Positions 16,801-32,875 of a DNA stretch of 64,000 bases are shown here, piece by piece. Location of the stretch: IMG/VR virus record IMGVR_UViG_3300026484_000007, positions 186,001-250,000 of that record. One strand, 5' to 3'. The translations under genes were made by a program, and so were the position numbers. Each line of letters begins with the position of its first letter. The first letter of the stretch is position 1. Below the pieces are notes generated by a model. It was not told the origin of the DNA, did not search any database, and saw only the letters and a list, made by a program, of their open reading frames with translations.

Positions 16801-16850
16801 AAGTGATCTAAAAAAGATCACTTTTGGAATTTTTTTGTCTTTTGAAAAAA
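16799..16850 (+). terminator. terminator hairpin with conserved tail
   Basis: AAAAGTGATCT-AAAAA-AGATCACTTTT; TTTTTTTGTCTTTTGAAAAAA. Confidence 0.75.
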
Positions 16851-16920: not shown

Positions 16921-16964
16921 TGCAATAAAAAAGTAAAATACTAAAAACAGAGAAAAGGAAAAAC

Positions 16965-18308
16965 ATGGAAAATTTAAAAATTTTAAGTGTATCAAATTTA
17001 GATTCGACTCAAGATGTTCTTTCACAATCAACGATTGACGTAGTAAAACATTCTCCAAAAAAATGCTATAGAATTTTAAGTAAAAATGATTTTGGTAAAA
17101 AAAGAAGAATCAATATTGGATTCTTTAATAAGAAGACGAATTTTATAGTAAGCAATGAAAACTCTTTAATGACGTTAAAATTAGATAATAATGAATTAAA
17201 AGTTCAAGCAACAACAATCGATTCAATTGAAAAAAATGAATTCCTAATCTATTATATTCCTATTTTAGAATTAAAAAGATTAAATAAAATTAATGAGCAT
17301 ATTTTGATTACTACGCATGATGAAGATGATCCTGAAAAGATCATTAAAACAGAAGTTCCTTTAACTTTCGATTTAGGTAGAGTAGTAGGTAAAATTTTAA
17401 AATATAGAAATCTTGATGAATACATAAATGAAAATCTTTATAAAGATCCTGAAAAGATCAAAGAGGATGAAGCTTTAGAAATTTTTCTAAAATTAATTAT
17501 TGAGAATAATTCGGCGGGAGCAGTATCGCTTCATAAAAAATTAATTTTAAGTAGTAATGAAGAATTTTTATTTGGAATAATTTTTGAATTCTTCGAAAAA
17601 CCAAAAACTTCAGAAGAGAAAAATAAAATATATATAAATGATATTAACGTGTATAGTTTAACTATGATATTAAATCTTTTAGGTGCGAGTTATTCAATTA
17701 GAAAAACTCCAGAAAGAGGTTTTCAATTAAGATTTAAATTACCTATTTATTTTGAATATTTATTAGAAAAATTATACGATTCTAATAAAGAATCTTTTAA
17801 AGATCTTTCTAAAGAAGAATTTTTATATAAATTAAAAATGTTTAGACAATATAGATTCTACGTGCTTAAAAATGAAAACTCTAATGAAAACTCTATCGAA
17901 ATCAAAGAACTTAGTGGATATAGTACTTATAAAAAAGTCGTAGAAGATTTCAAAAAATTAGACAATCAAGATGAAACTTTAATTAATTTAATTAATATTG
18001 GAGCGATTGAATTAATACCAGTTTATGATCTAGTATTTGAAAAAGTGGAATGTCCAGTAATGTTTGATTTTGTGACAGAAGGTAGAGAAAAAGGAACTAA
18101 CTATATCATTCCTGGATTACCATTATTAAAAAATAGTGATGGAGATATACTTGGTGTTATGGCAGTATGGACAAAAGATGCTGCGCAAGAAGCTGATAAA
18201 AAATTTGGAATTAAAACTAAATCTAATTTAGTAAGTCCATTGACTGGTGGTGTTTATCAATGGATAGGAATCGATGGAATTCTTGGATTATATAATTTTA
18301 CAAAATAG
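16965..18308 (+). CDS. split-intein C-fragment (390 aa, degenerate LAGLIDADG region) fused to 57-aa RNA polymerase beta' segment starting SDGD
   Basis: block F VMFDFVTE...NY, block G LLKN|S at 18134/18135; extein SDGDILGV...NLVSPLTG...DGILGLYNFT aligns to RpoC DGDQMAV...NILSPANG...DVVLGLYYMT. Confidence 0.88.
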   Translation: MENLKILSVSNLDSTQDVLSQSTIDVVKHSPKKCYRILSKNDFGKKRRINIGFFNKKTNFIVSNENSLMTLKLDNNELKVQATTIDSIEKNEFLIYYIPILELKRLNKINEHILITTHDEDDPEKIIKTEVPLTFDLGRVVGKILKYRNLDEYINENLYKDPEKIKEDEALEIFLKLIIENNSAGAVSLHKKLILSSNEEFLFGIIFEFFEKPKTSEEKNKIYINDINVYSLTMILNLLGASYSIRKTPERGFQLRFKLPIYFEYLLEKLYDSNKESFKDLSKEEFLYKLKMFRQYRFYVLKNENSNENSIEIKELSGYSTYKKVVEDFKKLDNQDETLINLINIGAIELIPVYDLVFEKVECPVMFDFVTEGREKGTNYIIPGLPLLKNSDGDILGVMAVWTKDAAQEADKKFGIKTKSNLVSPLTGGVYQWIGIDGILGLYNFTK

Positions 18309-18416
18309 ATTCAATTGATATACATTGATGGTAAAAATATTAAAAACTTTAAAAAAACTTTAAAAAAATAAAAAATAAAACCCTAAATAAAGGGAAAAGA
18401 ATTAAGGGAGAAATTC

Positions 18417-21400
18417 ATGGAAAATACTGGATTCAAAATAATCGAAAATCATAATTTTGATGAAATAAAAAGATATTGGTTAGATTTATATGGTGCAGAA
18501 GAATTAGCTTCTGATGAAACAATTAGAGTTGTTCCTCAAATCAAATTTGATAATGGAGAGCAAAAAGTTTTCACAATTAATAATCAAATAAACTCATTAT
18601 CTGGTTTTTTAGATTTCATAAAAAATATGGATAATCAATACGGAATAGGTAAAGTAGGATATAGTATTTCATCAGCAATATTCCATTATGATCCTGAAAA
18701 TAAAGATGATAAGGGTCAGGTTGTTAAGCCGAATGCTGGAACTTTCAAAAGAATAAAAAATGTAGTCGTGGATATTGATTTTCATATGGCGAAATCTAAA
18801 GATAGATTCGTGCTTGGATTTTTAGAAAATACTTATATTGATTTTGCTATTTTAAATATTTTCTTAAGCATTTCTGAAAAATTACAAGAAGCCGGAATTG
18901 ATGTTGTTAAACCTAAAATCGCTGGAATGACTGGTAGTGGTCTTCAAATTGTATTTGAAATGGATAGAGAATTATATAAAGATGATGCTCTAGTTTTTCT
19001 TACGTATCTAAAAAAGATCCTTGGTGGTTTAACTAAAGATTTAGCTTTAAAAGATCAATTTGGTAATATAGTATCTGCGACTGCTGAAGTTGATACAACG
19101 TTTGCGGATCTTGTTCACGTTCAAAGAGTTCTTGGAAGTATTAATCAAAAATACTTTACTTTATCAAAATATTCTAATGTATTTGAATTTAATTCTAAAG
19201 AAGAATATTTTAAAAATATTGATAGAATAAAAAACGAATATCTTAGTTTTATCAATGAAGCACAATTCCCAATTACCACTAAAGAAAAATATAATAAATA
19301 CATTACTCATATTATTGAAAGAATTAAAACTATTACTGCGAATGAAAGTGTGAATCAATTTTTCGTAGATAAATATTTACAATTAGCTAAAATGGAGCAA
19401 TACGCTGGAAAGACAGCAATTCGTCCTTCTGAAATGAAAAATATTGAATTAGATTTAATTTATAAATTAAAAGAAGAAGGAATAAAAACTATTGATTTAA
19501 TTAGAGATCTTGTAAAGATCGATCATGAGAGCTCTAGATTTATTGCTTTAAAATGTCCTTTTCATGAGGATACTAAATACAGTTTCGCAATTTATATTAA
19601 TGATGGAATTGATGTTCTTTACGATTTCCACGATGGTAAAAGTTATAATCTAGTTTCATTTTGGGAAAAAATTTACAATGTAAATAAAACGACAGCGATC
19701 AGTCAAATTTCTCAAAAAGCAGGAATTAAATTAGGCAAAGGGGAAAGAAAAGATTTCCAACAATTAGAAATCGAAGAAATCGTTGATCATCTTTTAGATA
19801 AAATTGATCTTGATAAATTTATTTATTATAGATTAGCTAATAAAAATAGAGTTTGTATTGTAAGACATAAAGATACTGGAGAAGCGTTCGTTTTCGATGG
19901 ACCAAAAATGATTGCTAGTCATGTTTTACAAAATCAATTAAAAGTTGAAGACGCTGATAAAAAATTACAAGAAGTGTTCTATAATAGATTCCAAGAAAGA
20001 ATTTTAATTGATGCTTTCGAAGAATTTCATCCAGGGAAACCTACGGTATTTCAAAGAGAATTCATTAAATTCGTGAATCTTTGGGTTCCAAGTAAAAATT
20101 ATTTAAACGCTCATGAAAGAGCTAAAGAATTAAAAGAAGAGCTTCAAATAGATAAAAAAATTCCTTTAGAAGATAGTATTCAAATTCTTAAAGAAAAAAC
20201 ACCTTGGACTTTCAAATACATTCAACAATTAACTCAAAAAGGAAATCTTTTATGGTTTATTAATTGGCTTGCAAATGGAGCTAAATATCAAGTTATGCCT
20301 ACTATTCCTGTAATTTTTGGTGTTCCAGGAGTTGGTAAGAATCTTTTTGTAACTACTATTCTTGAGTGGTATCATAATAATGAATATACTAAAGTAATGA
20401 CTTCTGATAGATTAATGTCTAATTTTAATAGTATTCTTGAAAATGCTAGTATGGTAGTTCTAGATGAAGGAGATGTATCTAATTCAAAAGAATTCGACTT
20501 CCTTAAATTCTTAAGTGGTAATAAGAATTTAATGATTGAAAAAAAAGGACAAGATGTAAAAATTTCTGAAAAATTCTTCAACATCATAATGTTCTCGAAT
20601 GGGGATATTCCAGTAAGACATTCTTTTGATGATAGAAGAATTCAATATTTTAAAACAGAGCAAACTTTATTACAAAGCTGCAAACAATGGGGTATCACAA
20701 TCGATGACTTCATTGAAAACGTAGAAAAAGAATTAGAAGATTTCTGGGGTATTCTTTTAAATATTAGCTTAGATAAAAAATGGAGCATTTCTAATGAAAA
20801 AGATAAATTATATATTATCCAAATTCTTAAACAGCATAGTTTTGGAGAATTAATTCTTAAATTATTAGAAGGTCAATGGAGAGATATTGCTTTACAATTA
20901 AATGAAAATATTTCAGATCCTGCTTTAATGAAAGCAAACCTTGAATTATTAAAAGAAATCAAAGAACATTTCGAAAACGAAAGCAAGCTTTCATTAACGT
21001 TAATTAATAGATATCTTAATGCTTTAAATTTTAAATATAAAACAAGTATTCAAAGATTCATTCAAAGAAACTCTTTACAAGACATTGGTATTGATATTGA
21101 GGTAACTTTAGAAGATGTATTAATTAAAATTGATAAAGAAAAACTTCAAAATTTAATAAATGTTCCTAATGTATTAACTATCAAAGAATATAAATCAATT
21201 GATAGATTTATTAGAATTCTTAAAAAAGCTATTGATAGTATAATTGATACGAAATCAAAATTTATTGAAGATGAAAAAATTATTGAATCTCAAGAGATTA
21301 AAGTAGAGACTGATATGGAAGCTTCGAATAAAAAAGAATTAGAATCTATAGGAATTTATGACAAAGATTCTCCCGAAATAGATCCAGATGGATTATTTAA

Positions 21401-21590
21401 AAATCCAGAAGTCAAAAAAGCGGAAAATGAAATAAATAAAATTTTTGATAAAGTGACCGATGAAGTGACCAATGAAGTATCTGAAGCATCTGATGAAAAT
21501 TCTGAAATTAATTTAGCGGTCGGCGTTAAACCAACGATCCCAGGCGCTCCAGTTCCTCCTCCACCAACACCTCCAAAAGGATCTTTTTAA
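18417..21590 (+). CDS. primase-helicase (AEP/PrimPol-like primase, Zn-finger, SF3-like helicase)
   Basis: VVDIDFH, TGSGLQ, QRVLGSIN; CPFHED; GVPGVGKN, VVLDE, MFSN. Confidence 0.85.
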   Translation: MENTGFKIIENHNFDEIKRYWLDLYGAEELASDETIRVVPQIKFDNGEQKVFTINNQINSLSGFLDFIKNMDNQYGIGKVGYSISSAIFHYDPENKDDKGQVVKPNAGTFKRIKNVVVDIDFHMAKSKDRFVLGFLENTYIDFAILNIFLSISEKLQEAGIDVVKPKIAGMTGSGLQIVFEMDRELYKDDALVFLTYLKKILGGLTKDLALKDQFGNIVSATAEVDTTFADLVHVQRVLGSINQKYFTLSKYSNVFEFNSKEEYFKNIDRIKNEYLSFINEAQFPITTKEKYNKYITHIIERIKTITANESVNQFFVDKYLQLAKMEQYAGKTAIRPSEMKNIELDLIYKLKEEGIKTIDLIRDLVKIDHESSRFIALKCPFHEDTKYSFAIYINDGIDVLYDFHDGKSYNLVSFWEKIYNVNKTTAISQISQKAGIKLGKGERKDFQQLEIEEIVDHLLDKIDLDKFIYYRLANKNRVCIVRHKDTGEAFVFDGPKMIASHVLQNQLKVEDADKKLQEVFYNRFQERILIDAFEEFHPGKPTVFQREFIKFVNLWVPSKNYLNAHERAKELKEELQIDKKIPLEDSIQILKEKTPWTFKYIQQLTQKGNLLWFINWLANGAKYQVMPTIPVIFGVPGVGKNLFVTTILEWYHNNEYTKVMTSDRLMSNFNSILENASMVVLDEGDVSNSKEFDFLKFLSGNKNLMIEKKGQDVKISEKFFNIIMFSNGDIPVRHSFDDRRIQYFKTEQTLLQSCKQWGITIDDFIENVEKELEDFWGILLNISLDKKWSISNEKDKLYIIQILKQHSFGELILKLLEGQWRDIALQLNENISDPALMKANLELLKEIKEHFENESKLSLTLINRYLNALNFKYKTSIQRFIQRNSLQDIGIDIEVTLEDVLIKIDKEKLQNLINVPNVLTIKEYKSIDRFIRILKKAIDSIIDTKSKFIEDEKIIESQEIKVETDMEASNKKELESIGIYDKDSPEIDPDGLFKNPEVKKAENEINKIFDKVTDEVTNEVSEASDENSEINLAVGVKPTIPGAPVPPPPTPPKGSF

Positions 21591-21616
21591 GATCCTTTTA
21601 TAAAAAGGAATTTTAT

Positions 21617-21889
21617 ATGAATGAAGTAATTAATGAAGCGGTTAATGTAATAGAATTTAAATCTTACTTATCTATAGATTTTTTAATTTATGTGGGCAGA
21701 TGGATTTTTAGTGCTTTTGTTATGATGATACCTTTATATTTTTTACAAAAATTTCAGATTTCTAAATATTTTAAAAAAATTAAAGGTTATAAAACCGAAT
21801 ACCAAGAATACATTGATTTAATTATTATTCAAATAATTGGAGCTTTTATTTTCTGGTATATTGATCAAATGATATTTAAAGGAGTTTAA
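21617..21889 (+). CDS. small two-TM membrane protein
   Basis: two hydrophobic segments; RBS. Confidence 0.7.
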   Translation: MNEVINEAVNVIEFKSYLSIDFLIYVGRWIFSAFVMMIPLYFLQKFQISKYFKKIKGYKTEYQEYIDLIIIQIIGAFIFWYIDQMIFKGV

Positions 21890-21890
21890 T

Positions 21891-22187
21891 ATGGATGAAA
21901 TTCAAATGATTAACACATATAATAAAATTGTTGGTACTGTTTATGGAGAAGTAGAAATTGACGCGAACTCGTCATCAACTGTCGATATCTCTTCTCCGAT
22001 TAATGGAATTACAGCTGTGGTGACTTTAAAATTAAAAGATGATTCTGATGCGGATAATGTTATTTATAAATCAGAGCATTCTTTTTCTTACGAGATTAAT
22101 GATGATGGAAATCAAATCACAATCTATAACAATTCAACTGCGAAAGCAACTTGTGTATATACTATTATAGATTTATATTTAAATTGA
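21891..22187 (+). CDS. hypothetical beta-rich protein
   Basis: AAGGAG RBS, 98 aa. Confidence 0.7.
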   Translation: MDEIQMINTYNKIVGTVYGEVEIDANSSSTVDISSPINGITAVVTLKLKDDSDADNVIYKSEHSFSYEINDDGNQITIYNNSTAKATCVYTIIDLYLN

Positions 22188-22213
22188 TCCTTTTGGATTA
22201 ATTTTTTATTACG

Positions 22214-22354
22214 AAAAACTCGTGATCCTAAAACGTTGAGCATCTATAGATACACAAAGATATATACGAGTTCTAAAACTATCTTTAAAATTTTAGAACT
22301 GCTATATATCGCGGAAGATCTAAAATAGATGCGACGAAGAAAATCAAAGTTTTT
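22214..22354. repeat. ~130-bp intergenic repeat, reverse orientation, longer central spacer
   Basis: GTTCTAAAA-ctatctttaaaa-TTTTAGAAC core; ends AAAATCAAAGTTTTT. Confidence 0.9.
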
Positions 22355-22406
22355 CAAGTTTAAAAATTAGAATTTAAATAATTTAAATATATTTAAAAGG
22401 AAAAAG

Positions 22407-23012
22407 ATGTTATATATAATTAATTTATTTGGAGGTCCTGGTTCAGGTAAAAGTACTACAGCAGCATCTTTATTTGGAGCAATGAAATCTTTAAAGAAAC
22501 AAAAAGAATCTTTTTTAGATCAATATCAAATTGAATTAGTAACTGAATTTGCTAAAGATAAAGTATACGATTTTCATCATATATGTTTAGAAAATCAATT
22601 TTTTACTAGTGGAAATCAATATCATAGAATGTGGAGAGTAATTAATTTTTGGAATTATCATAATTATAAAAATGGAATTATAATTACAGATTCGCCTATA
22701 ATAAATGGTATATTTTATGATACTCATCCAAAAAAGGAATTACTCAAAAAAGTTTTAATCGAATACTCTGAATTCGACGAATACAAAAACAATTTTGCTG
22801 GACTTGAACAATTTAATTATTTATTAATAAGAGATCATGATTTTGAACAATCTGGAAGACTTCAGACTTCAGAAGAATCTGATAAAATTACGAATGATAT
22901 TAAAAAATTTTTTAATAAAAATAATAAGGATCTTTTAGAGATTCAAACTTCAAAAGCTCAAGAATTTATTTTGAATGATATTTTAAAAAATATAAAAAAG
23001 GAAAAAACATGA
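22407..23012 (+). CDS. P-loop nucleoside/nucleotide kinase-like ATPase (NadR/AAA_28-like)
   Basis: INLFGGPGSGKST, ELVTEFAK, ITDSP, GRLQ. Confidence 0.8.
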   Translation: MLYIINLFGGPGSGKSTTAASLFGAMKSLKKQKESFLDQYQIELVTEFAKDKVYDFHHICLENQFFTSGNQYHRMWRVINFWNYHNYKNGIIITDSPIINGIFYDTHPKKELLKKVLIEYSEFDEYKNNFAGLEQFNYLLIRDHDFEQSGRLQTSEESDKITNDIKKFFNKNNKDLLEIQTSKAQEFILNDILKNIKKEKT

Positions 23013-23449
23013 AAGAATTAGAATTGAACGCTTCGAACAAGCCAAATTTTTTATCGGATGAAGAAATTAATTCTCTTTTGGATGTAGTTTTCGATAAAAA
23101 TTTTATTGAAAACACTCAAAGAAAATATTTTACTAGCGATAATAAAGATGATATAATTAAAGGCCATCAATTAATACTAGAACATATTAGTGTTAGAATT
23201 GATAAGCTTTTACTTGGATTTAAAAATATAAAAATAGAAGGATCTTTAGCAGATCCAATAATAAAAATTCTTGGAGAAAATCAATATGATGATCACGTGA
23301 ATTTATTTAAAATTATTCAATCGACAAAAAATCTAAATAACGATATTATCGAAGCTATTGCTCAAATGGATTATATTGAAAATAAAATAAGAAAAAAAGT
23401 GGAAGAAAAGGAACTCGAAGATGAAAATACAGAAGAATGTCATTTTTGA
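23009..23449 (+). CDS. hypothetical protein
   Basis: 146-aa ORF, ATGA-coupled. Confidence 0.7.
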   Translation: MKELELNASNKPNFLSDEEINSLLDVVFDKNFIENTQRKYFTSDNKDDIIKGHQLILEHISVRIDKLLLGFKNIKIEGSLADPIIKILGENQYDDHVNLFKIIQSTKNLNNDIIEAIAQMDYIENKIRKKVEEKELEDENTEECHF

Positions 23450-23909
23450 TAATAATACTAAATTACTAATTTATGCAGATGGTAGTTGTCTCGGAAATCC
23501 TGGAAAAGGAGGATGGGCAGCTCTTTTAATTTTTTTAAAAAATGGAGCGAAGAAAGCTGAAAAAATGATATCGGGTTGTTCTAAATCTAGCACTAATAAT
23601 AAAATGGAATTACAAGCAGTTATCGAAGCTTTAAAAACTATAAAATTAAATACTATTTCGTATCCAATAGAGATTCATGTTGATTCTCAATATGTTCAAA
23701 AAGGGCTAACTGACTGGAGAGAATCTTGGGAGTATCGAAATTTTAGAGGAGTAAAGAATCCTGAGCAATGGAAAGAATTGATTGATTTAATAAATAAAAT
23801 TGAACATAAAAAAATTAAAATATCTATCAATTATGTAAAAGCTCATAACGGGCATCCTGAAAACGAAAGAGTCGATGACGAAGCAAGAAAAAAAGCCGAG
23901 AGATGCTAA
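23421..23909 (+). CDS. rnhA: ribonuclease HI
   Basis: IYADGSCLGNPGKGGW, TNNKMEL, DSQYV, VKAHNGHPENERVD. Confidence 0.97.
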   Translation: MKIQKNVIFDNNTKLLIYADGSCLGNPGKGGWAALLIFLKNGAKKAEKMISGCSKSSTNNKMELQAVIEALKTIKLNTISYPIEIHVDSQYVQKGLTDWRESWEYRNFRGVKNPEQWKELIDLINKIEHKKIKISINYVKAHNGHPENERVDDEARKKAERC

Positions 23910-23943
23910 AGAAATGCTAAAGAATGGCTAAAAGGGGAAGCGT

Positions 23944-24432
23944 ATGAAAAACATGAAAAACATGAAAAACATTTTTACATCCATAAAAGATCTTTTTAAA
24001 AAAGATTACGAAAAAATTATTGAAGAATTAAAAGATGAGCATAAATATTTACTCATTCTTTATCACGAAATTATTCATATTTGTACGGTAGAAAAAGATA
24101 TTGAAAGATTAAATAATATGATCGATAATTTTTTAAATATCTTAAAAGAACATTTAGAAAAAGAAAATAAAGAGATCTATGAATTTTTTGACAATACAAT
24201 TACTGATGAATTGATAAAAGAACATATCGAAAAAATTAGAAAAGACATCAAAATTATTGATAAAAAATTGAAAATTATTTTAAAAAAGCATAGAAAAATC
24301 AAAGAGGAAACCCTTGATTCATTCCTAAGAGATTTTTCTTATTTAATACAAATGATAATCAAAAGAGTTGAGTTAGAAGAGAATATTATATATTCTTATT
24401 TTCTTCGTAAAAAATCTTCAAAAGCAATTTAA
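23944..24432 (+). CDS. hemerythrin-like (HHE) domain protein
   Basis: EH...HLEKEN..IY...EH...RVELEENIIY. Confidence 0.7.
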   Translation: MKNMKNMKNIFTSIKDLFKKDYEKIIEELKDEHKYLLILYHEIIHICTVEKDIERLNNMIDNFLNILKEHLEKENKEIYEFFDNTITDELIKEHIEKIRKDIKIIDKKLKIILKKHRKIKEETLDSFLRDFSYLIQMIIKRVELEENIIYSYFLRKKSSKAI

Positions 24433-24529
24433 AGAAATAAAAATTCATTATCAAATTATAAGCATATGATAATCATACGAAAATCATTCAAATGTGATAA
24501 AATTACAATAAAATCAAAGGAGACTAGAA

Positions 24530-25177
24530 ATGAAAAAAATTACATTAACTGAAGCATTATCTGAATTAAAATTATACGATAAAAAAATTACTAAAGAAAT
24601 ATCAGAATTAAGTAGATCTAAAAGCACAGTCGATTATGTTATAGGTAAAAATAAATTAACTGAAATCAATAAAATGACTGAAGAAGAGTTAAAAGAATAT
24701 GCTCAAAGCGCTGTAGATAAATTATTAAATTTAATTAAAAACAGAGGTATTCTTAAAGCAGCAATTGCTAAAGCAAACGCAATTACAACATTAAACGTTA
24801 ATGGAAAAGAATATACTATCGTAGAAGCTATTGAAAGAAAAAATAATATTTATAAAGAAAAAGAAATTTTAAATATTCTTGCAGAAAATTATAACAATGT
24901 TGCTTATAAAGTTTCAAGAATCAATGAAAATGCGAGAGATGAAGTAAATAGATTATTAGAAGCTAAATTATCTAGCGATAGTAAAAATCAATCGTCAGAT
25001 GAAATTGAAAAACTATCTCAAGTTCTTTTAGAAGCTAAAGAAGCTAAAATTCTCGATCCATATAAAATCGGAGATTTAATAGTAAAAATGCAAGAAGAAA
25101 TTGAAGAGTTCGAAACTAACATCGACGTAGCATTATCAATCGTAAATGCTAAAACAGAAATCGAAGTAGATCTTTAA
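24530..25177 (+). CDS. conserved coiled-coil protein (DIP1984/DUF6847-like)
   Basis: TLTEALSELK, IAKANAIT, TIVEAIERK, LDP, IDVALSIVNAKTEIEV. Confidence 0.6.
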   Translation: MKKITLTEALSELKLYDKKITKEISELSRSKSTVDYVIGKNKLTEINKMTEEELKEYAQSAVDKLLNLIKNRGILKAAIAKANAITTLNVNGKEYTIVEAIERKNNIYKEKEILNILAENYNNVAYKVSRINENARDEVNRLLEAKLSSDSKNQSSDEIEKLSQVLLEAKEAKILDPYKIGDLIVKMQEEIEEFETNIDVALSIVNAKTEIEVDL

Positions 25178-25224
25178 AAGATCTACTTTTTTTTGTCATT
25201 AGAAAAAATTGTAAAGGAGAATAA

Positions 25225-27525
25225 ATGAACGATATTTACGTAATTAAAAGAGATGGAAGAAAAGAAAAATTTCAATTAAGCAAAATAAGAAAACAGATTG
25301 AATTTGCATGCGCGCCTACTTCAGTAAGTCCTCTTGAAATCGAAAGTCTTTTAAAGATTGATCTTCATAAACCAGATTTAAAAACTTCAGACATTCAAGA
25401 AATCATTATTGGATCAATTGTAAAAAATATTAATATTGATAATAAAGAGTGGGATTTAATTGCTGGTAGAGCAGCGATGTTTGATCTTTATAGAAACGTT
25501 TATAAAGTTACAGGTTTTGATCCAAAAGATTGGAGAGAACATATTAAATGGCTTACTGAAAATAATAGATACAGAACTGATATTTTATCTAAATTAGAAA
25601 AAATGGAGAAAGAAAGAAAATTAGAATTCTTAGATGATCTTTTAGAGAACTTTGTAACTGGAAATTATGATTTTCAAATGGTGTACTCGCAAGTACAAGT
25701 TATTAAATCTAAGTATCTTTTAAAAAGCAAAAGAAAAATTATTGAATATCCAGTGTTGACTGATATAGTTAATAGTATTATTTTATGCGATGGAACTTAT
25801 GAAGATTTTAAAATTCTTTTTGAAATGATTCATAATCAATATATTTCATTAGCGACTCCATTTAAAGCTAATCTTAGAATTCCAAATGGAAGTGTTACAT
25901 CTTGTTTTATTGGAGAAAATATCGATAGTCTTGCGGGAATTGCTAAAGCTTGGAAAGATATGGCTAAGATATCTCAAGAAGGTGGAGGAATCGGTTGGGA
26001 CTTTTCAAAAATTAGACCAGGAGATTCTTATACTGATAACGTTCCTAAATCAAATACTATCAATAAATGGCTTAAGATAGTTAATGATATTATGGTTGCT
26101 GTTAATCAAAGAGGAATTAGACCAGGAGCTTTAACTCCAGCAATACCTTGGTGGCATTTAGATGTTTTTGATTTTATCGATATGAAATCAGAATTAAATG
26201 GAGATCTTAGAGAAAAATGTTTTGACCTTTTCCCTCAAGTAACTGTAGATAATTATTTTATTGATGCGGTACTTAACGACGAAGAAGTTTATTTATTCGA
26301 CCAAAAAGAATATAAAGATTTAACTTGCATCGATATTACTGAGTTAGTCGATGAAAAATTATATGAAACTCATAAACATGTTGAAAAATTAATCAATGAA
26401 AATAAACTTACTCATTATAAAAAGATTAAAGCTAGAGATCTTTGGAAAAAAATCTTATGGGTATGGGTTGAGATAGGTGATTTTTATATCGCTCATAAAG
26501 ACAATATTAATAAAGCAAATTACTTAAAAAATGATCCTCAAGGAGGGATTACAAAGAATGTTAATCTATGTTGTGAAAGTTATAGTCTTACAAAAGCACC
26601 TACTCAATGGGCTTCAAAATCAATTAATGATGGTGATAGAGAAATAACAATTGAAACGGATGGTAGATATCATGCTTGTAATCTTTGTAGTATCAATCTT
26701 ACAAATCTTGTAGATAAATCGGAAGAATTTATTAAATTAGTTTCTAAATACGCAGTAATTATTCTTGATAGAGGAATTGATTTAAGTACTTTCCCAGTTC
26801 TTGAAGCTGAATTAAATTCAAAAGAATTAAGAAACATAGGTATCGGATTTGTAGGTATGGCTGATTATATGGCTTATAATAATAAAATGTTTGACACTGA
26901 AGATGGTCAAAGATTTGCGGAAGCTTTAATCGAAAGATTCTCTTGGTACGTTCATAATACAAGCGTAGAATTAGCTAAAGAAAAAGGATCTTATCCATTA
27001 TTCAAACCAGAAAATTATTATAAAATTCTTGGGCATAAACCAGAAGAATTAGAAAATTTTAGTAAAGCAAATGGAAATAATTTCCCTTGGAGACAATTAC
27101 AACAAGATATTTTTGAACATGGAATTAGAAATTTTTATTTATTAAGTCCAGCACCAAACACATCAACTGCGATCTTAAATGGATCAACAGCGAGTTTCTT
27201 ACCAGTATATAATAAAGAAATGTATCAAACAATGAGCAATCAATCAGTTCCTATTATTCCTAAATTTATTAAAGAAAAATTCTGGTTGTATAAAACTAAA
27301 TTCGATTATATTCCAAAAGATATCATCAATTATACTAGAAGACTTCAAAGATGGATTGACGCAGGAATTTCATTAGAAATTAATATTAATCCAGCTCTTA
27401 CGAATATCAAAGAAATTTCAGATGCTATTCTAGATGGTTTTAAATCTGGAGAGCTTAAAGCAATATATTATTCATTGACAATTGATGGTAAAAAACAAGA
27501 AGGTTGTGTATCATGTGCGAATTAG
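25225..27525 (+). CDS. nrdA: class I ribonucleotide reductase alpha subunit with ATP cone
   Basis: VIKRDG, SCF, NLCCE, CNLCSINL, APNTST, YY, C-terminal CVSC. Confidence 0.96.
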   Translation: MNDIYVIKRDGRKEKFQLSKIRKQIEFACAPTSVSPLEIESLLKIDLHKPDLKTSDIQEIIIGSIVKNINIDNKEWDLIAGRAAMFDLYRNVYKVTGFDPKDWREHIKWLTENNRYRTDILSKLEKMEKERKLEFLDDLLENFVTGNYDFQMVYSQVQVIKSKYLLKSKRKIIEYPVLTDIVNSIILCDGTYEDFKILFEMIHNQYISLATPFKANLRIPNGSVTSCFIGENIDSLAGIAKAWKDMAKISQEGGGIGWDFSKIRPGDSYTDNVPKSNTINKWLKIVNDIMVAVNQRGIRPGALTPAIPWWHLDVFDFIDMKSELNGDLREKCFDLFPQVTVDNYFIDAVLNDEEVYLFDQKEYKDLTCIDITELVDEKLYETHKHVEKLINENKLTHYKKIKARDLWKKILWVWVEIGDFYIAHKDNINKANYLKNDPQGGITKNVNLCCESYSLTKAPTQWASKSINDGDREITIETDGRYHACNLCSINLTNLVDKSEEFIKLVSKYAVIILDRGIDLSTFPVLEAELNSKELRNIGIGFVGMADYMAYNNKMFDTEDGQRFAEALIERFSWYVHNTSVELAKEKGSYPLFKPENYYKILGHKPEELENFSKANGNNFPWRQLQQDIFEHGIRNFYLLSPAPNTSTAILNGSTASFLPVYNKEMYQTMSNQSVPIIPKFIKEKFWLYKTKFDYIPKDIINYTRRLQRWIDAGISLEININPALTNIKEISDAILDGFKSGELKAIYYSLTIDGKKQEGCVSCAN

Positions 27526-27818
27526 ACCAAAATGCTAAAAATGAAATCTTAAAAGAAATAAGACAATTAAGGCAAAAATTTGAAGAGGATCTTAGAAATA
27601 AAAGATTCTCTTCGGATATACCAGAGAGATCTTTTGCAGATCAGTTTGAGCAAATTGTCCCACCATTAACATTTTTAATAGTGGTTTTATCTATATTGAT
27701 TTTATTCATTGGTGATGTATACAATAAACATCAATTAAATAAATTAATTATCGAAAAAAATTGTAGTCAATTTTTAAATAAGATGCATGAAATAAGAGAA
27801 ATGAAGGAGAAAAAATGA
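27513..27818 (+). CDS. hypothetical single-TM protein
   Basis: hydrophobic LTFLIVVLSILILFI; start uncertain (27504 or 27513). Confidence 0.6.
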   Translation: MCELDQNAKNEILKEIRQLRQKFEEDLRNKRFSSDIPERSFADQFEQIVPPLTFLIVVLSILILFIGDVYNKHQLNKLIIEKNCSQFLNKMHEIREMKEKK

Positions 27819-28885
27819 GCCAAATATCAAATCAAGTAAATCATAATTGTAAAGTTAAAAAATTATTTAATCCAGATGTTCAGGATGAACACAAATTATA
27901 CGGAGGTTGTACGACAAATACATTAGATCTTGCTAACGTAAAATATCCAGTGTTCGTTGATTGGGTGGATAAACAATACGCAAATAACTGGTTACCTCAA
28001 AAAGTTGATATGACTGGGGATTATAGTCAATACTGGAATGATTTAACAGATGATGAAAGAGTTGCGTTTGATAATATTTTATCTTTCTTAATATTCTTAG
28101 ATAGTATTCAAACGAACAATCTTCCTAATATTGCAGATTATATTACATTACCTGAGGTTGTATATGCATTAGCAAGACAAACATATGACGAAGCAATACA
28201 TAGTCGTTCATATGGATTAATATTAAATTTTAATATTAAAGATAAAGCTAAAATAGAAGAAATTACTTATCTTTGGAGAAAAAATAAAATTCTTTTAGAA
28301 AGAAATAAAAAAATTGCAGAGATCTATCAAGACGCAAAAGATAATCATTCTGATCTTAATTTTATCAAAGGTCTTATAGGGAATTTTATGTTAGAAGGAA
28401 TTTATTTTTATAATGGATTTCAGTTCTTTCATAATCTTGCATCAAGAGGTCTTATGATTGGAACAGATACTCAAATCAGATATATCCAAAGAGATGAATT
28501 AGGACATTTAAAGCTTTTCGCTGATATTATTAAAATATCGCAAGAAGAAAATCCAGAAATTTGGACAGACGAAGTTAAAGAAATCGTTTACGATATGTTT
28601 AGAGATGCTGTAGATCTTGAAATTAAATTTAGTCAAGATGTTATTGGAGATAAAATTCTTGGAATGAGTTCACAAGCAATCGAAGATTACGCTTATTGGC
28701 TTGGGAATAAAAGACTTAAAGAAATTAAATTAAAACCAATTTTTCCAGAAAGAAAAAATCCTTATTCTCATTTAGAAAAAATTGCTTCTGTCGAAGATGA
28801 AAGTTCAAATAGAACTAATAACTTCGAAAGCACATCAATTACTTATAAATCTCCAGAAATTCTTGATGGATGGGATCAAATTTAA
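27815..28885 (+). CDS. nrdB: class I ribonucleotide reductase beta subunit
   Basis: WLPQ, FLDSIQ, EAIHSRSY, LEGIYFYNGF, RDELGH. Confidence 0.96.
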   Translation: MSQISNQVNHNCKVKKLFNPDVQDEHKLYGGCTTNTLDLANVKYPVFVDWVDKQYANNWLPQKVDMTGDYSQYWNDLTDDERVAFDNILSFLIFLDSIQTNNLPNIADYITLPEVVYALARQTYDEAIHSRSYGLILNFNIKDKAKIEEITYLWRKNKILLERNKKIAEIYQDAKDNHSDLNFIKGLIGNFMLEGIYFYNGFQFFHNLASRGLMIGTDTQIRYIQRDELGHLKLFADIIKISQEENPEIWTDEVKEIVYDMFRDAVDLEIKFSQDVIGDKILGMSSQAIEDYAYWLGNKRLKEIKLKPIFPERKNPYSHLEKIASVEDESSNRTNNFESTSITYKSPEILDGWDQI

Positions 28886-28907
28886 AACCGATTTAAAAAG
28901 GAATCAA

Positions 28908-29093
28908 ATGTTACTTAAAGAATGTAATGGTTGCAAATATCTAGCTCGATTGATCGGTATAGGTCAAGGAGTTAGATGTACAAATCCAGAAAATCAAATA
29001 ACTGGAATGGATGGATCAAAAGCGATAGTTATATCTCAGATAGAGAATTGTAATTATTATAAGCAACATAAAAAAGATAAGAAAGAATCTTAA
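28908..29093 (+). CDS. small Cys-rich protein
   Basis: AAGGA RBS before ATG 28908; CNGC...C...C. Confidence 0.65.
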   Translation: MLLKECNGCKYLARLIGIGQGVRCTNPENQITGMDGSKAIVISQIENCNYYKQHKKDKKES

Positions 29094-29114
29094 AAGGATC
29101 TTAAAAAGATCCAA

Positions 29115-29142
29115 TTGAAATATTTTTTTTGAAATTTAAGAT
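29115..29142 (+). promoter_or_regulatory. sigma70-like promoter for the ncRNA
   Basis: TTGAAA-N16-TAAGAT, ~9 nt upstream of the RNA closing stem. Confidence 0.45.
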
Positions 29143-29151
29143 TTTCTTTAA

Positions 29152-29535
29152 CTTTCTTTATCAGGCGATAAAAATCGAATAATCCCGCCTGACTGGAGCG
29201 AAATACCAGTCACAAAATTATTTTACATGGGTTAAAATAAGGAGATCGCACTGAAGATGCGCTTTTATAATTACACCAAAAACGAAGGTTCGATTCCTTC
29301 CTTTCCCAACATAATAGGGAAAGTAGCCAAGAGGTAAGGCATTGGTTCCAAAATATAAATATATAACAATCGAACGAAAAGTTCAAAGTAAAAAATTTAA
29401 AATTTAATGCTTAAATACTAACTACTAAAAATTAACCTTCAAAATTTAAAATAAAAAGCTTTTTAAAATCTTGGAGGAAGTTTTAAGTGGCGAGGATTAG
29501 CCCGATTTTTGATCCAAGCTGCTTGATAGAGAAAG
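29152..29535 (+). ncRNA. large structured ncRNA with permuted tRNA-like domain and 7-nt periodic tract
   Basis: closing stem 29152-29166/29521-29535 with two G-U pairs; AAAAATCG/CGATTTTT, TAATCC/GGATTA, CGCC/GGCG; possible pseudoknot CTTGGA/TCCAAG; no ORF; terminator follows. Confidence 0.8.
29275..29346 (+). ncRNA. circularly permuted tRNA-like domain (no anticodon loop)
   Basis: ACCAA-aaac-GAAGG TTCGATT CCTTC-CTTTCCC-A, linker ACATAATA, GGGAAAG-TA-GCC AAGAGGTAA GGC-A-TTGGT. Confidence 0.85.
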
Positions 29536-29540
29536 ACTTC

Positions 29541-29584
29541 AAAACCCTCGCATAGTGCGAGGGTTTTTTTGTCGTTAGAAAAAA
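29541..29584 (+). terminator. intrinsic terminator with conserved tail
   Basis: AAAACCCTCGCA-TAG-TGCGAGGGTTTT + TTTGTCGTTAGAAAAAA. Confidence 0.9.
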
Positions 29585-29626
29585 TTAGATAAAATTAGAA
29601 AAATAAAAAAATTTTGTAAATAAAAT

Positions 29627-29701
29627 CTATGGGGAGCAATGCTCCCCATAGGGGGACTTTGTCCCCCTTGGAGGAGTGGAGACTTTTCGTCTCCACTCCT
29701 C
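29627..29701. repeat. GC-rich triple-hairpin cassette, copy 1
   Basis: CTATGGGGAGC-AAT-GCTCCCCATAG, GGGGGAC-TTT-GTCCCCC, GAGGAGTGGAGAC-TTTTC-GTCTCCACTCCTC. Confidence 0.85.
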
Positions 29702-29708
29702 TCTTTCT

Positions 29709-29747
29709 GCTATTTATATATCAATTAAAACTAAAGCAGTTCTAAAA
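29709..29747 (-). promoter_or_regulatory. candidate phage promoter TTTTAGAAC-N16-GATAT-N5-TAGC
   Basis: same bipartite motif at 29927, 30559, 31287. Confidence 0.55.
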
Positions 29748-29777
29748 AATCTCCGTAAATAAAATTACAAATAAAAT

Positions 29778-29920
29778 CTATGGGGAGCATTGCTCCCCAT
29801 AGGGGGACTTTGTCCCCCACTCACTGGGGTGGTTGCCCACATTGGCAACGGGAGCAATCCCGCTCATTTGAGCGGGGCCCGACCACCCCGGAGGACTCAC
29901 CTCCTTTCTTGGAGTCCTCC
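29778..29920. repeat. GC-rich hairpin cassette, copy 2, with multibranch domain
   Basis: same first two hairpins, then GGGGTGGT/ACCACCCC enclosing small hairpins, then GGAGGACTC/GAGTCCTCC. Confidence 0.85.
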
Positions 29921-29926
29921 TTTTTT

Positions 29927-29965
29927 GCTAATTAAATATCTGATAAAACTAAAGCAGTTCTAAAA
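29927..29965 (-). promoter_or_regulatory. candidate phage promoter
   Basis: minus strand TTTTAGAACTGCTTTAGTTTTATCAGATATTTAATTAGC. Confidence 0.55.
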
Positions 29966-30044
29966 AATCTTTATAAATAAATTTAAAAAATCTTTTCTAA
30001 AACAATATATAAATTATCAATTAAAATATATAAGGAGATTAATT

Positions 30045-30329
30045 ATGGCAACTGCTTTTCATAAAGATTACAATGCAGAATACGTAATCGGTGATGACGT
30101 TGTAAATTCTGAAGAAGTAAAAAATACTCAGCCAACTGTATTATCTAAAATTATAGATGGAAAACCAGCTGATGTTAATACCGAAACTAAAGATATGCTA
30201 ACCGAAGAAACTGTATGGTTTAGAAATGACAGAATCAGACAAACTCTTCAAGATCAATACACTGAAGTTTCTAGACAAACTTTTGAAATTGATCAATTTG
30301 AAACTACTGATTTACCAGGAAATCCATAA
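30045..30329 (+). CDS. small acidic hypothetical protein
   Basis: TAAGGAG RBS, 94 aa, followed by terminator. Confidence 0.8.
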   Translation: MATAFHKDYNAEYVIGDDVVNSEEVKNTQPTVLSKIIDGKPADVNTETKDMLTEETVWFRNDRIRQTLQDQYTEVSRQTFEIDQFETTDLPGNP

Positions 30330-30380
30330 GCAAATATTGCGATGCATGGCGCTAATGGATAACTCGTATATATATCTCAT

Positions 30381-30434
30381 AAAACTCCGGAGTTCTAAAA
30401 TAGAGCTCTGGAGTTTTTTTGTCGTTAGAAAAAA
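30381..30434 (+). terminator. terminator with conserved tail, overlapping a GTTCTAAAA box
   Basis: AAAACTCCGGAGTTCT-AAAAT-AGAGCTCTGGAGTTTT + TTTGTCGTTAGAAAAAA. Confidence 0.8.
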
Positions 30435-30476
30435 TTAGAAAAAATTAGAAAAAATAAAAAAATTTGCAAATAAAAT

Positions 30477-30551
30477 CTATGGGGAGCAATGCTCCCCATA
30501 GGGGGACTTTGTCCCCCTTGGAGGAGTGGGGAATTTTCATCTCCACTCCTC
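30477..30551. repeat. GC-rich triple-hairpin cassette, copy 3 (part of ~185-bp direct repeat 29564-29748 / 30414-30598)
   Basis: near-identical to copy 1 including flanks. Confidence 0.85.
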
Positions 30552-30558
30552 TCTTTCT

Positions 30559-30597
30559 GCTATTTATATATCTAATAAAACTAAAGTAGTTCTAAAA
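30559..30597 (-). promoter_or_regulatory. candidate phage promoter
   Basis: minus strand TTTTAGAACTACTTTAGTTTTATTAGATATATAAATAGC. Confidence 0.55.
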
Positions 30598-30644
30598 ATA
30601 ATTAAAAATTAATGCGAAAAAAAGAGACAGAAGCGTCAGTAGGC

Positions 30645-31265
30645 TTAAGCCTCCGATTGATGCTTTTTAAGCAATTTATCGAAGGCTTTCAGATACCTAC
30701 TAATCTTGACAATATACACAATTGTCGCCCCTGAAATTATCCCGAATAGGAGTATAACTCCATTGTCGGGCAACTTCAGGTATGAATAGCCCATTAATAA
30801 TAGGGCCACAACCAATTGCACTCTCGAGCGCGCTTTATTCACGTCACTCGAAAACGTCTCCGCCTCTTCTGAATTCAGCAAGACGTTCGTCAAAACTGAA
30901 TTCATGTTCGCCTGAACGGCGAACAACAATACATACAGCGGAAAGATCAATACGACGATCTTTGCCGCTAATACTCTATCTATCTCCGGATGGAGATAGA
31001 ATAGGTACACTAGAATGCAGAAATACGCTACATCTAGTGTGCTTAATAACACGAAGCTCGCAAAGTAGCTAATTTTGTGTGTTAGCCACTTATTGAACTC
31101 CATCATTGTAGCGCTCATTAGACTAATGAACGCGATAAACCCAACCGAGAACTCACCATAAAGGTGAGACTCAAATGGTTGAATTATTTGGAAAGCTAAG
31201 CTTCCCAGAATAACTATCTTTATTCTTAATGTTAAGAATAAAGACTTCAATACTTCCATCTTCAT
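30645..31265 (-). CDS. multi-pass membrane protein, GC-richer than neighbours
   Basis: AAAGGAG RBS, 5-6 hydrophobic helices. Confidence 0.8.
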   Translation of the reverse strand: MKMEVLKSLFLTLRIKIVILGSLAFQIIQPFESHLYGEFSVGFIAFISLMSATMMEFNKWLTHKISYFASFVLLSTLDVAYFCILVYLFYLHPEIDRVLAAKIVVLIFPLYVLLFAVQANMNSVLTNVLLNSEEAETFSSDVNKARSRVQLVVALLLMGYSYLKLPDNGVILLFGIISGATIVYIVKISRYLKAFDKLLKKHQSEA

Positions 31266-31286
31266 CTTTTCTCCTTTGATTTTTTT

Positions 31287-31326
31287 GCTATTTTAGATAT
31301 CTCATAAGCCTTTACCAGTTCTAAAA
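31287..31326 (-). promoter_or_regulatory. candidate phage promoter directly upstream of RBS of 30645..31265
   Basis: minus strand TTTTAGAACTGGTAAAGGCTTATGAGATATCTAAAATAGC. Confidence 0.6.
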
Positions 31327-31426
31327 AAAACTTCGATTTTCTTAACAAAGATTTTCTTAACAAACGAAGAAAATTCATAAGAATAAAATACAAATAAATA
31401 CAAAAATATTTAATTAAGGAGTATTA

Positions 31427-32875
31427 ATGGGTTTTGATTTACTCGATATAAATAAATTTATTAAAGAAAAGGATGCTAAAGAAGTAACATCCGAAAAAAC
31501 ATTTTTATTTACAAAAGGCGATTTTATTCCAGATCCAAATGGTTTATATAGTCCACAGATCTTCGAAGGAACTGGTATTAAAGGACAACGGGATAAATAC
31601 GGATACATATCTTTAAAAAATACAATTATGCATCCATTAATTTATAAGAATCTAAAAAAGATTGCTACAATTTTTTATTATGTAGCAACTTCTGAAAAAC
31701 ACGTTGAAATTATTGATGGTGAACTTATAGAAACACCACCAGAAAACGGTGGTAAAACTGGATTAGACTTTCTAATAAATAATTGGAAAAAAATTAATTT
31801 AGATAAATACAAGAAAGAAACGAATGAATTCTTTATTGAGTTTCTAAAGAAAGTTCAAGAAAAATTAATTTTTATTAATAAACTTCCAGTTATTCCAGTA
31901 CTTTATCGACCTTATACTTTTGAACACGGACGAGTAATTGAAGATGAAATTACTGAAAAGTATAAAAAAATTTTATTAGAATACAAAAAAACTATGGGAG
32001 GTCTTTCCGGTCAGCCTTTGAATTCGTTGAATTCTAAAAATTTAACTGCGTCTGAAGATGCAGTTAGTTTAACTGGAAGAAGATCTACTATATCTAACAT
32101 TGATAACCCATTAGGTATTTCTGATGATAATGGATTAGAATTATTAAATTCATTTATTCAGAATAATGTAAATTCTTCAGAAAAAGTTCAAAAATACGTT
32201 CAGGATCTATATGATTATTTTATTTCTAAATTAGAGAAAAAAGAAGGTTTCTTTAGAAGTAATTTAGTAGGTAAAAGATTAGATAATGTATCAAGATTAG
32301 TTGCTAATGCTCGTCCAGATATACCAGTAGATTGCGTAGGTATTCCTTGGCATGTATTAATTAATATTTTTGATTATTACGTATTAGCTGAGTTAGAGCA
32401 TAATAAAGATGTCGCTGAAAAACTTGGTCTTGCTGACATTAGTACAGTAGACTTTGGAAAACACATCTATTATATCTATAAAAACTGTGATATTTATTGC
32501 AAGTCGTTTCCTGAAAGACAACAGATATGGATAGAATTACTTACAGAAATCTTTGATAAACATGATTATCTTAGAGTAGTATTTAAACGGGATCCAGGTT
32601 GGTCAGCGAATTCATTCTGGTCAGTAAAACCATTAATCTTAAAAGGATGTTCGTATTACATTGTTGTAAATTCATTTTATTACAAACCACTTGGTGGAGA
32701 TAGTTTTAATACTAATATTCTAATTAAAGAATCTACTCAAAAATCTATTACTAAAGATTTAATTTTATCAAAGGATCCAAAAAAGATCCAAAAAAGATAT
32801 ACGTTAGAATTTCCAGTAGCTAATGAAGCAAAAACATTAAAAAATTATTACGAAAAAAATAAAAAGGAGAAATAA
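31427..32875 (+). CDS. RNA polymerase beta' N-terminal fragment ending in GGD, fused to 57-aa split-intein N-fragment
   Basis: GLYSPQIF, LPVIPVLYRP, KEGFFRSNLVGKRLD, KRDP; KPLGGD|SFNTNILI at 32701/32702. Confidence 0.9.
   Translation: MGFDLLDINKFIKEKDAKEVTSEKTFLFTKGDFIPDPNGLYSPQIFEGTGIKGQRDKYGYISLKNTIMHPLIYKNLKKIATIFYYVATSEKHVEIIDGELIETPPENGGKTGLDFLINNWKKINLDKYKKETNEFFIEFLKKVQEKLIFINKLPVIPVLYRPYTFEHGRVIEDEITEKYKKILLEYKKTMGGLSGQPLNSLNSKNLTASEDAVSLTGRRSTISNIDNPLGISDDNGLELLNSFIQNNVNSSEKVQKYVQDLYDYFISKLEKKEGFFRSNLVGKRLDNVSRLVANARPDIPVDCVGIPWHVLINIFDYYVLAELEHNKDVAEKLGLADISTVDFGKHIYYIYKNCDIYCKSFPERQQIWIELLTEIFDKHDYLRVVFKRDPGWSANSFWSVKPLILKGCSYYIVVNSFYYKPLGGDSFNTNILIKESTQKSITKDLILSKDPKKIQKRYTLEFPVANEAKTLKNYYEKNKKEK

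Follow-up and report, generated by a model that had tools for sequence, protein, structure and literature searches.

Within the 64-kb stretch of DNA analyzed here (the window; positions 186,001 to 250,000 of the 272,602-bp contig of IMG/VR record IMGVR_UViG_3300026484_000007), two open reading frames (ORFs), ORF A and ORF B, most probably encode the precursors of one N-terminal β′ subunit (β′N) of an RNA polymerase, its gene being broken by a permanently split class 1 intein and its two parts being joined by protein trans-splicing. ORF A carries the N-extein fused to a short N-terminal intein fragment (IntN), and ORF B carries a long C-terminal intein fragment (IntC) fused to the C-extein (Table 1). 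The subunit is probably the counterpart of the non-virion β′N of AR9 and phiKZ, and the intein is inserted after the first aspartate of the DxDGD motif.

ORF A reads ...FYYKPLGGD up to the first catalytic aspartate, D425, whose last base is 32701, and continues with SFNTNILI... for 57 residues up to the stop codon; the original prediction, which had described a β′ N-fragment ending ...YKPLGGD followed by 57 unrelated residues, was right to the base in the translation. The β′-like nature that it had assigned to ORF A was confirmed by a match to phrog_2986 (1.6e-33), next to weak matches to Pfam Rpb1_1 and Rpb1_2, and by the AF2 model (pLDDT 82), whose nearest structure in Foldseek was chain d of the AR9 non-virion RNA polymerase (7s01_d, E 3.4e-14), followed by bacterial β′. 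The IntN tail was modelled as four strands and a terminal helix (pLDDT 60-82). Among the 92 homologous clusters of ORF A, the β′N homologues of more than ~34% identity all end ...PLGGD/S plus a tail of 34-65 aa (median 49). G424, D425 and S426 are invariant in the ORF A alignment, and serine is residue 1 of the intein in 85 of 85 N-half homologues.

The first 390 residues of ORF B end ...VMFDFVTEGREKGTNYIIPGLPLLKN (...PGLPLLKN), and from base 18135 the frame reads SDGDILGVMAVW...SPLTGG...GILGLYNFTK; the gene downstream is a primase-helicase and not further β′. Pfam and PHROGs assigned ORF B itself to no family, and by tblastn it matched none of 50,697 deposited phage genomes. Structure comparison was decisive, the predicted fold of the 390-residue part being that of an intein (Hint). 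With the AF2 model of ORF B (pLDDT 85, pTM 0.83) as query, each of the best nine Foldseek matches in the PDB was a full-length intein that carries a LAGLIDADG domain (E 4.8e-9 to 6e-4), TliVMA (7qss, E 4.8e-9) being first, followed by PhoVMA, PI-PfuI, PI-TkoII and PI-SceI; the match probability was 1.00 for eight of the nine and 0.82 for 1jva_B. The "intein-like" label that these residues had received earlier is thus supported by a predicted Hint plus LAGLIDADG fold. Among predicted viral structures (BFVD), the matches were intein-bearing proteins, e.g. ribonucleotide reductases, terminases, helicases and giant-virus RNA polymerases. In the IntC model the strands preceding block B come first, and the block B region, an endonuclease-like insert and blocks F and G are all included; the first Hint strands are not in it and are expected from the tail of ORF A. 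ORF B has 93 homologous clusters, all full length and almost all of 380-460 aa, and its family has 75 representatives in 1.84 billion proteins.

The three metal-binding aspartates are not found in one chain: D425 belongs to ORF A, and D392 and D394 to ORF B. A scan of the window in six frames revealed no D.DGD, the only partial motifs being those of ORF A and ORF B, and the intact DxDGD-containing β′ gene that the original prediction had named as counterevidence is absent from these 64 kb. What the joined exteins should look like is seen in an intein-free homologue, P0241 (445 aa, ...NLGGDSDGDAVNV...). Its residues 9-389 align with residues 3-426 of ORF A (E 1e-47) and its C-terminal residues 389-445 with residues 391-447 of ORF B, the two exteins tiling it end to end and abutting at GGD/SDGD, an arrangement that is not due to chance. 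At the same site (GGD/...N/SDGD), a sister clade carries contiguous mini-inteins of 179-208 aa with Cys1 (13 clusters among the matches listed) or contiguous full inteins of 488 aa with Pfam LAGLIDADG_3 (PF14528; 10 clusters among the matches listed), or the site is empty, in 425-428-aa proteins reading GPLGGDSDGDTVAV or GGDCDGD. The intein thus occupies a conserved host site at which intein-free alleles equal the joined exteins. The empty alleles and P0241 therefore indicate that the predicted ligation product, ...PLGGDSDGD..., is encoded by an ordinary gene in relatives. Intein-free or contiguous alleles in related phages, proposed earlier as a check, were accordingly found, including empty alleles that read GGDSDGD.

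We considered whether the Asn of KN/SDGD corresponds to the Asn of cellular NADFDGD and rejected this assignment: the intein-free phage β′ proteins read GGD-x-DGD, and because the phage enzymes have Gly at the position of the cellular Asn, the Asn before SDGD is the last intein residue. In a further lineage (L013) the halves are adjacent, in forward order and 110 nt apart, with an IntN of 33 aa (SVIGCSVEL...) and an IntC of 192 aa that is without an endonuclease domain and has Thr at +1; this arrangement is likely an intermediate between the contiguous and the permuted one. The L013 locus also encodes a ribonucleotide reductase with an Intein_splicing match. Two more distant β′N proteins, P0182 (L008:10001-11416) and P0185 (L009:9708-10967), end soon after an intact GGD[FY]DGD; region D is apparently missing from them, and the neighboring β′C-like genes begin later. 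The non-polymerase tail that follows DGD in both was tried as a second split site and rejected, their neighborhoods holding ordinary genes for the C-terminal β′ subunit (β′C) and no intein half.

Residue conservation in the C-half was read from an alignment of 65 ORF B family members. His29, Gly52, Phe54, Asn55, Asp368, Asn379, Asn390, Ser391 and DGD (D392, G393, D394) are invariant in all 65 despite an overall identity of only about 30-45%, and block F (consensus M-[YF]-D-[LF]-[TV], in M-Y-D-L-T...T-N-Y) and block G (P-L-L-K-N/S) are recognizable. Of the features of a class 1 intein, the Cys or Ser as first residue is present as Ser426 right after GGD, the C-terminal Asn followed by Ser, Thr or Cys as Asn390/Ser391, and the block F (C2) aspartate as Asp368. 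The junction residues of the original prediction (Ser1, terminal Asn and Ser+1) proved invariant over about 90 clusters of each half, and both junction nucleophiles are indeed serines, Ser426 of ORF A and Ser391 of ORF B. Cysteines number 0-3 per half and are non-conserved in the pairs checked. Serine-type inteins, and only these, share a conserved histidine that follows Lys or Arg in the NX motif (PMC10189870). Judged from its position, ~37 residues ahead of block B, the invariant His29 is a candidate for this histidine; the residue before it is Lys in the window protein, as in 27 of 65 members.

The two halves are separately encoded, each with its own start and stop codon and 13 kb apart, on the exteins of one host protein, as expected of a natural split intein. 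Alignment by hhalign placed residues 23-97 of the IntC profile on residues 56-130 of the contiguous inteins (E 1.5e-4, probability 51%), and from this offset the break therefore lies near residue 33 of the ancestral or contiguous intein. The block B region thus belongs to IntC, in agreement with the earlier claim of a split between blocks A and B that leaves a short IntN and a long IntC. The break found here is of the atypical kind, near the N-terminus and upstream of block B, whereas the endonuclease insertion point is where almost every natural split intein is broken (Dassa 2009, PMC2677866); the natural exceptions known are the TerL inteins (IntN 25-37 aa) and PolB16 OarG (15 aa). At 57 aa, the IntN exceeds the known range of 15-37 aa of atypically split inteins of the TerL, PolB16 and VidaL types (PMC13014065), and for the combination of a longer IntN with an IntC that retains an in-frame endonuclease-like domain we found no description in the literature.

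The insert in IntC, at about residues 133-345, has a LAGLIDADG fold, as judged from whole-chain matches to PI-PfuI, PI-SceI and TliVMA and weaker ones to I-DmoI and I-OnuI, but neither of its two LAGLIDADG helices retains the catalytic acid. In motif 2 (consensus FLLGILEG-Y/F; FLFGIIFEFF in the window protein) an aromatic residue stands at the position of the acid, and in motif 1 that position varies among K, S, L, N, E and R, with no acid conserved. Judging from these motifs, homing activity has probably been lost, as is expected for an element unable to move as a unit. The domain has nevertheless diverged no faster than the splicing domain, with a mean pairwise identity of 0.38 vs 0.39 for the Hint part (0.46-0.52 for the exteins), and has invariant residues of its own (Asn228, Tyr230 and Tyr243). 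The insert is shorter or absent in some lineages (P0211, P0228).

In the proposed mechanism, IntN (57 aa) would provide the block A strand and the first helix, and IntC (390 aa) the remaining Hint fold with the dead LAGLIDADG insert. The IntN tail would dock on IntC and complete the Hint fold, after which an N-O acyl shift would occur at Ser426 of ORF A (intein Ser1), probably aided by His29 and Asp368. Transesterification would pass the N-extein to Ser391 of ORF B (+1), cyclization of Asn390 would free the intein, and an O-N shift would yield a 482-aa β′N reading ...KPLGGDSDGDILGV..., with the motif as in the intein-free relatives and a predicted junction peptide of ...PLGGDSDGDILGV.... Only after ligation would the Mg-binding triad form in the double-psi β-barrel and the subunit assemble with β′C and β, and a module of ~450 aa kept inside the Mg-binding loop should be incompatible with catalysis. 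The chemistry and the inactivity of the unspliced halves are what we infer; the sequences, fold, site, allelic series, conservation and synteny were computed.

Several results weigh against this reading. The Thr-x-x-His of block B (N3) is lacking, residues 63-66 being S-N-E-N in the window protein; over the family, the Thr position is Gly in 42, Ser in 18 and Thr in 5 members, and the His position Asn in 24, His in 13 and Lys in 9. The block F histidine is replaced by Thr in 49 of 65, and the penultimate (block G/C1) histidine is absent, the position being Lys in 54 of 65 and His in 5. No consistent charge complementarity between IntN and IntC, as in canonical split inteins, was seen. Beyond block A, a profile of the IntN tail had no significant similarity to the contiguous inteins at their N-termini (a control with reversed sequence scored about the same), and the sequence profile of the ORF B family against PDB sequences gave only chance matches and no intein. 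Pfam Intein_splicing (PF14890) matched only 9 of 65 ORF B relatives, all below the gathering score (best 28.8 bits vs a cutoff of 35.8), and not the window protein itself; these matches span profile positions 24-138 or 95-155 of 155, leaving only the first 23 uncovered. Finally, the D.DGD scan spans 64 kb of a 272.6-kb genome.

These departures from the canonical residues could mean that the intein no longer splices and that the domesticated Hint plus LAGLIDADG module serves as a permanent non-covalent dock for the two β′ pieces, giving a polymerase with one more split subunit. Jumbo-phage polymerases are already assembled from split β and β′ pieces (PMC7824862), and the purifying selection on the LAGLIDADG-like domain with its dead motifs hints at a retained role. 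Permanent docking is nonetheless distinctly unlikely. Asn390, Ser391 and Ser1, invariant over about 90 clusters, are needed for splicing and not for docking, and the ~450-aa module would have to thread the Mg-binding loop between the first and second aspartates, presumably a steric obstacle. The contiguous relatives at the same site also lack the histidine of block B and the penultimate one, yet they must splice because they are inserted in the active-site loop of an enzyme that has to work. Moreover, the block B histidine is dispensable for splicing of the PolB16 OarG intein, where the critical histidine is instead a formerly overlooked one upstream of block B (PMC10189870), and Gly-Asn termini are known in working inteins (PMC1635734).

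That both ORFs are remnants of a disrupted β′ gene, with an intact β′N encoded elsewhere in the 272.6-kb genome, is highly improbable. Only 64 kb of that genome is visible, and phiKZ-like phages have two polymerase sets (PMC8287921), but neither ORF A nor ORF B is disrupted, and about 90 clusters of each retain the full length. The halves occur together on at least 12 contigs and diverge in step, and the exteins, at 0.46-0.52 identity, are as conserved as expected under selection; no other DxDGD is present in the window, and the tail is present on every β′N homologue of more than ~34% identity. Joining of the halves by an intron or by trans-splicing of transcripts, rather than as protein, is barely credible, even with the intron-like insert and HNH endonuclease gene that phiKZ carries in the same motif: the halves stand in reversed order with a primase gene in between, both have a start and a stop codon of their own and an in-frame extension that is intein-like or of intein fold, and a search of the window against Rfam gave neither an intron nor any other RNA family.

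The permuted arrangement of the intein halves is conserved. In four relatives spanning the family (L001, L003, L011 and L012), the C-half gene is followed on the same strand by the primase-helicase, the N-half gene and β′C, and in one of the four the terminase is just upstream, as in the window. The distance and the reversed order noted earlier thus hold, with the C-half gene first and 13 kb between the halves in the window, and the order recurs in relatives. The primase and the N-half gene are separated by ~10 kb of other genes in the window and its closest relative; in the window these include the genes for ribonucleotide reductase. Over 12 pairs, each on a shared contig, the pairwise distances of IntC were correlated with those of the N-extein at r = 0.93 (Mantel 0 of 5000); the intein has thus passed down vertically together with the polymerase.

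The claim that the halves belong to different transcription units stood in part. It is plausible in the window, where, besides the terminator-like hairpin preceding ORF B, five others on the plus strand (25163, 29541, 29670, 30381 and 30520) and a minus-strand ORF are found between the halves; in the compact relatives, only the same-strand primase-helicase separates them, and separate transcription units are not conserved across the family. Terminator-like sites in 15000-34500 numbered 25 vs 5.7 expected, and sigma-70-like promoter matches were at chance level (115 vs 113 expected) and uninformative on transcription units. Given the compact same-strand arrangement, the timing or assembly checkpoint proposed originally is therefore no more than a possibility. 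It is conceivable, if rather unlikely, that the split intein is domesticated and now serves the phage, either as a licensing step (conditional trans-splicing, e.g. coupled to assembly or compartment entry) or through a second job of the excised IntN-IntC complex, e.g. DNA binding, because the dead LAGLIDADG-like domain is conserved like the splicing domain and the permuted gene order is fixed.

Table 1. Features of the split β′N locus, of the surrounding window and of the L013 comparison locus.
Feature	Position	Strand	Basis
ORF A, β′ N-extein fused to IntN, 482 aa	31427..32875	+	ORF list, translation
N-extein, β′ residues 1-425, ending ...PLGGD with first catalytic Asp D425	31427..32701	+	
IntN, 57 aa from Ser426 (intein residue 1); block A SFNTNILI, then strands, terminal helix	32702..32872	+	
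ORF B, IntC fused to β′ C-extein, 447 aa	16965..18308	+	ORF list, translation
IntC, 390 aa; Hint strands from before block B onward, LAGLIDADG-like insert, block F (MFDFVT...TNY), block G (PLLKN)	16965..18134	+	
His29 codon, invariant His, candidate NX-motif His of Ser1 inteins	17049..17051	+	65/65
LAGLIDADG-like domain, ~residues 133-345, degenerate catalytic motifs	17361..17999	+	fold matches to inteins of PI-PfuI, PI-SceI type
Asp368 codon, block F aspartate	18066..18068	+	65/65
C-terminal splice junction Asn390/Ser391	18132..18137	+	both 65/65
C-extein, 57 aa; SDGD (second and third catalytic Asp) and remainder of β′ region D	18135..18305	+	
Terminator-like hairpin just upstream of ORF B	16797..16827	+	pattern scan only
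T4-type terminase	12425..14290		
Primase-helicase	18417..21590	+	Pfam DUF5906 and Zn_ribbon_DnaG
Ribonucleotide reductase, both subunits	25225..27525 and 27815..28885		
β′ C-terminal subunit (β′C), partner of the predicted spliced product	34376..35728	+	weak Pfam Rpb1_4/5; phrog_2962 at 4.6e-23
β-like subunit of same polymerase	42021..45140	+	Pfam Rpb2_6 at 4.8e-16; phrog_3148 at 4.4e-50
L013 split locus	L013:4135-6244 (ENA ERZ23491340 scaffold_1157)		

The window is AT-rich (GC 0.23-0.33), and Rfam and tRNA scans of it found nothing. Its polymerase pieces share 23-28% identity with those of phiKZ, AR9 and phiR1-37-type jumbo phages, and its terminase only ~27% with that of any deposited phage; the window therefore derives from an uncultured jumbo-phage lineage. 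The sole match of β′C among the phiKZ genes was gp74 of the non-virion RNA polymerase. The polymerase set of the window looks like the non-virion type, an assignment that is weak because the solved phage polymerase structures are non-virion only. Directly upstream of the β gene, an ORF of 551 aa (40344-41999) has no Pfam or PHROG match and, judged by its position, could be an N-terminal β piece or a phage-specific polymerase subunit. Between β′N and β′C (32875-34326) lie two ORFs without homologues in PHROGs, the one at 32875..33576 being of low complexity, with repeated (D)LTEPT units and Lys/Glu-rich stretches, and the one at 33595..34326 being Gly/Ala-rich at both ends; in the compact relatives β′C follows β′N directly, without the two intervening ORFs.

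The intergenic region 29541-30621 contains a 186-nt module twice (94% identical) and three copies of a GC-rich perfect hairpin (CTATGGGGAGCA.TGCTCCCCATAG), in addition to other strong stem-loops. A motif, A[AT]AGCAGTTCTAAAA[AT], occurs 24 times in the window at up to 3 mismatches vs 5.6 expected, mostly in intergenic DNA (2282-2312, 12272-12302, 22290, 29733, 29951, 30583, 40202-40232 and 49402). Three inverted pairs precede genes, among them the terminase and the ORF at 40344; ORF A has a weak copy ahead of it (31312), ORF B none. This motif may be a phage promoter or regulatory site.

A fixed split intein is also known from cyanobacterial DnaE, an essential polymerase subunit that is trans-spliced from two distant genes and, like the intein described here, is fixed and vertically inherited. 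The DnaE intein has the canonical break at the endonuclease insertion point, an IntN of about 100-123 aa, an IntC of ~36 aa, Cys nucleophiles and no endonuclease domain. Closer in the position of the break is PolB16 OarG (PMC10189870), likewise natural and atypically split, with a short IntN, Ser1 and Ser+1. Its NX-motif histidine, preceded by Lys or Arg, has its putative counterpart here in the invariant His29, which follows Lys in the window protein. PolB16 OarG resides in a DNA polymerase, with an IntN of 15 aa, an IntC of 168 aa without an endonuclease domain and a penultimate His, whereas the present intein sits in the catalytic loop of an RNA polymerase and has an IntC of 390 aa with a LAGLIDADG-like domain and a penultimate Lys. 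The Ser1/Ser+1 combination that the original prediction had singled out as of interest is thus rare but not unprecedented, since PolB16 OarG has both serines. AceL-TerL, GOS-TerL and Cat-TerL (PMC11766414; Dassa 2009, PMC2677866) are also natural phage split inteins broken near the N-terminus, with IntN of 25-37 aa, and GOS-TerL shares Ser1. The TerL inteins are mini-inteins of the terminase large subunit (IntC 104-115 aa) with Cys at +1 and both halves at one locus, whereas the halves here are reversed and 7-13 kb apart.

The contiguous inteins of the sister clade (P0238 type, 915 aa; P0236 type, ~630 aa) share the identical insertion point, GGD/...N/SDGD, and have block F (aYDlT) and a non-His penultimate residue in common with the split family; the full version has the LAGLIDADG domain. 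They differ in being one polypeptide with Cys1 and intact-looking LAGLIDADG motifs, in contrast to the Ser1 and dead motifs of the split family, and they coexist with empty alleles and so appear to be still mobile. Outside blocks A, B/N4, F and G the similarity to the split family is weak, and a histidine at the position equivalent to His29 was found by ungapped alignment by eye, where hhalign places Gln. An insertion in the same motif is also known from phiKZ, in which a mobile element carrying the HNH endonuclease gene gp56 breaks β′N within one codon of DFDGD. In the phiKZ entry (AF399011; L010:3924-6762; genes 55, 56 and 56.1), the deposited gp55 coding sequence ends ...KAPN/GQLNN at a stop codon and is followed by the HNH gene gp56. 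ADFDGDQLN... is encoded ~1.35 kb downstream, and joining after N415 places DFDGD at 417-421, as in the cryo-EM paper. The phiKZ insert differs from the intein described here in that its HNH gene is free-standing, there is no intein and removal presumably occurs at the RNA level. These insertions suggest a hot spot for homing elements in the DNA that encodes the DxDGD loop.

RNA polymerase inteins at highly conserved sites have been described in Mja rPol A′ and A″, RPB2, RPA2 and RPC2; the known ones are contiguous and come from archaea, eukaryotes and giant viruses (PMC1635734). In the literature searched, no cellular or giant-virus RNA polymerase intein is described as split, as phage-borne or as lying within the DxDGD triad. 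Neither a split nor a contiguous intein in a phage RNA polymerase β′ was found described by full-text search, whose coverage excludes most subscription journals, so that earlier work is possible. To the original prediction, the present analysis adds the evidence from the fold, the series of alleles at one site, the family's size and age, an endonuclease domain that is dead yet conserved, the candidate NX-type His and the permuted synteny shared by relatives.

For protein chemistry, the halves represent a large natural Ser1/Ser+1 split-intein family with a short N-fragment and no conserved cysteines; cysteine-free split inteins of the Ser type with a short IntN have been called rare and sought after (PMC13014065). 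If true, this would be the first split intein that we found reported in a multisubunit RNA polymerase, and it lies inside the Asp triad itself. One site holds empty alleles, mini-inteins, full inteins, an adjacent split and a permuted split with a dead endonuclease domain, an allelic series showing a route from a mobile intein to a fixed, essential part of gene expression. If splicing is real, a jumbo-phage clade comprising about 90 protein clusters at 90% identity, with genomes of about 270-290 kb, would need post-translational protein ligation to build the catalytic center of its own RNA polymerase.

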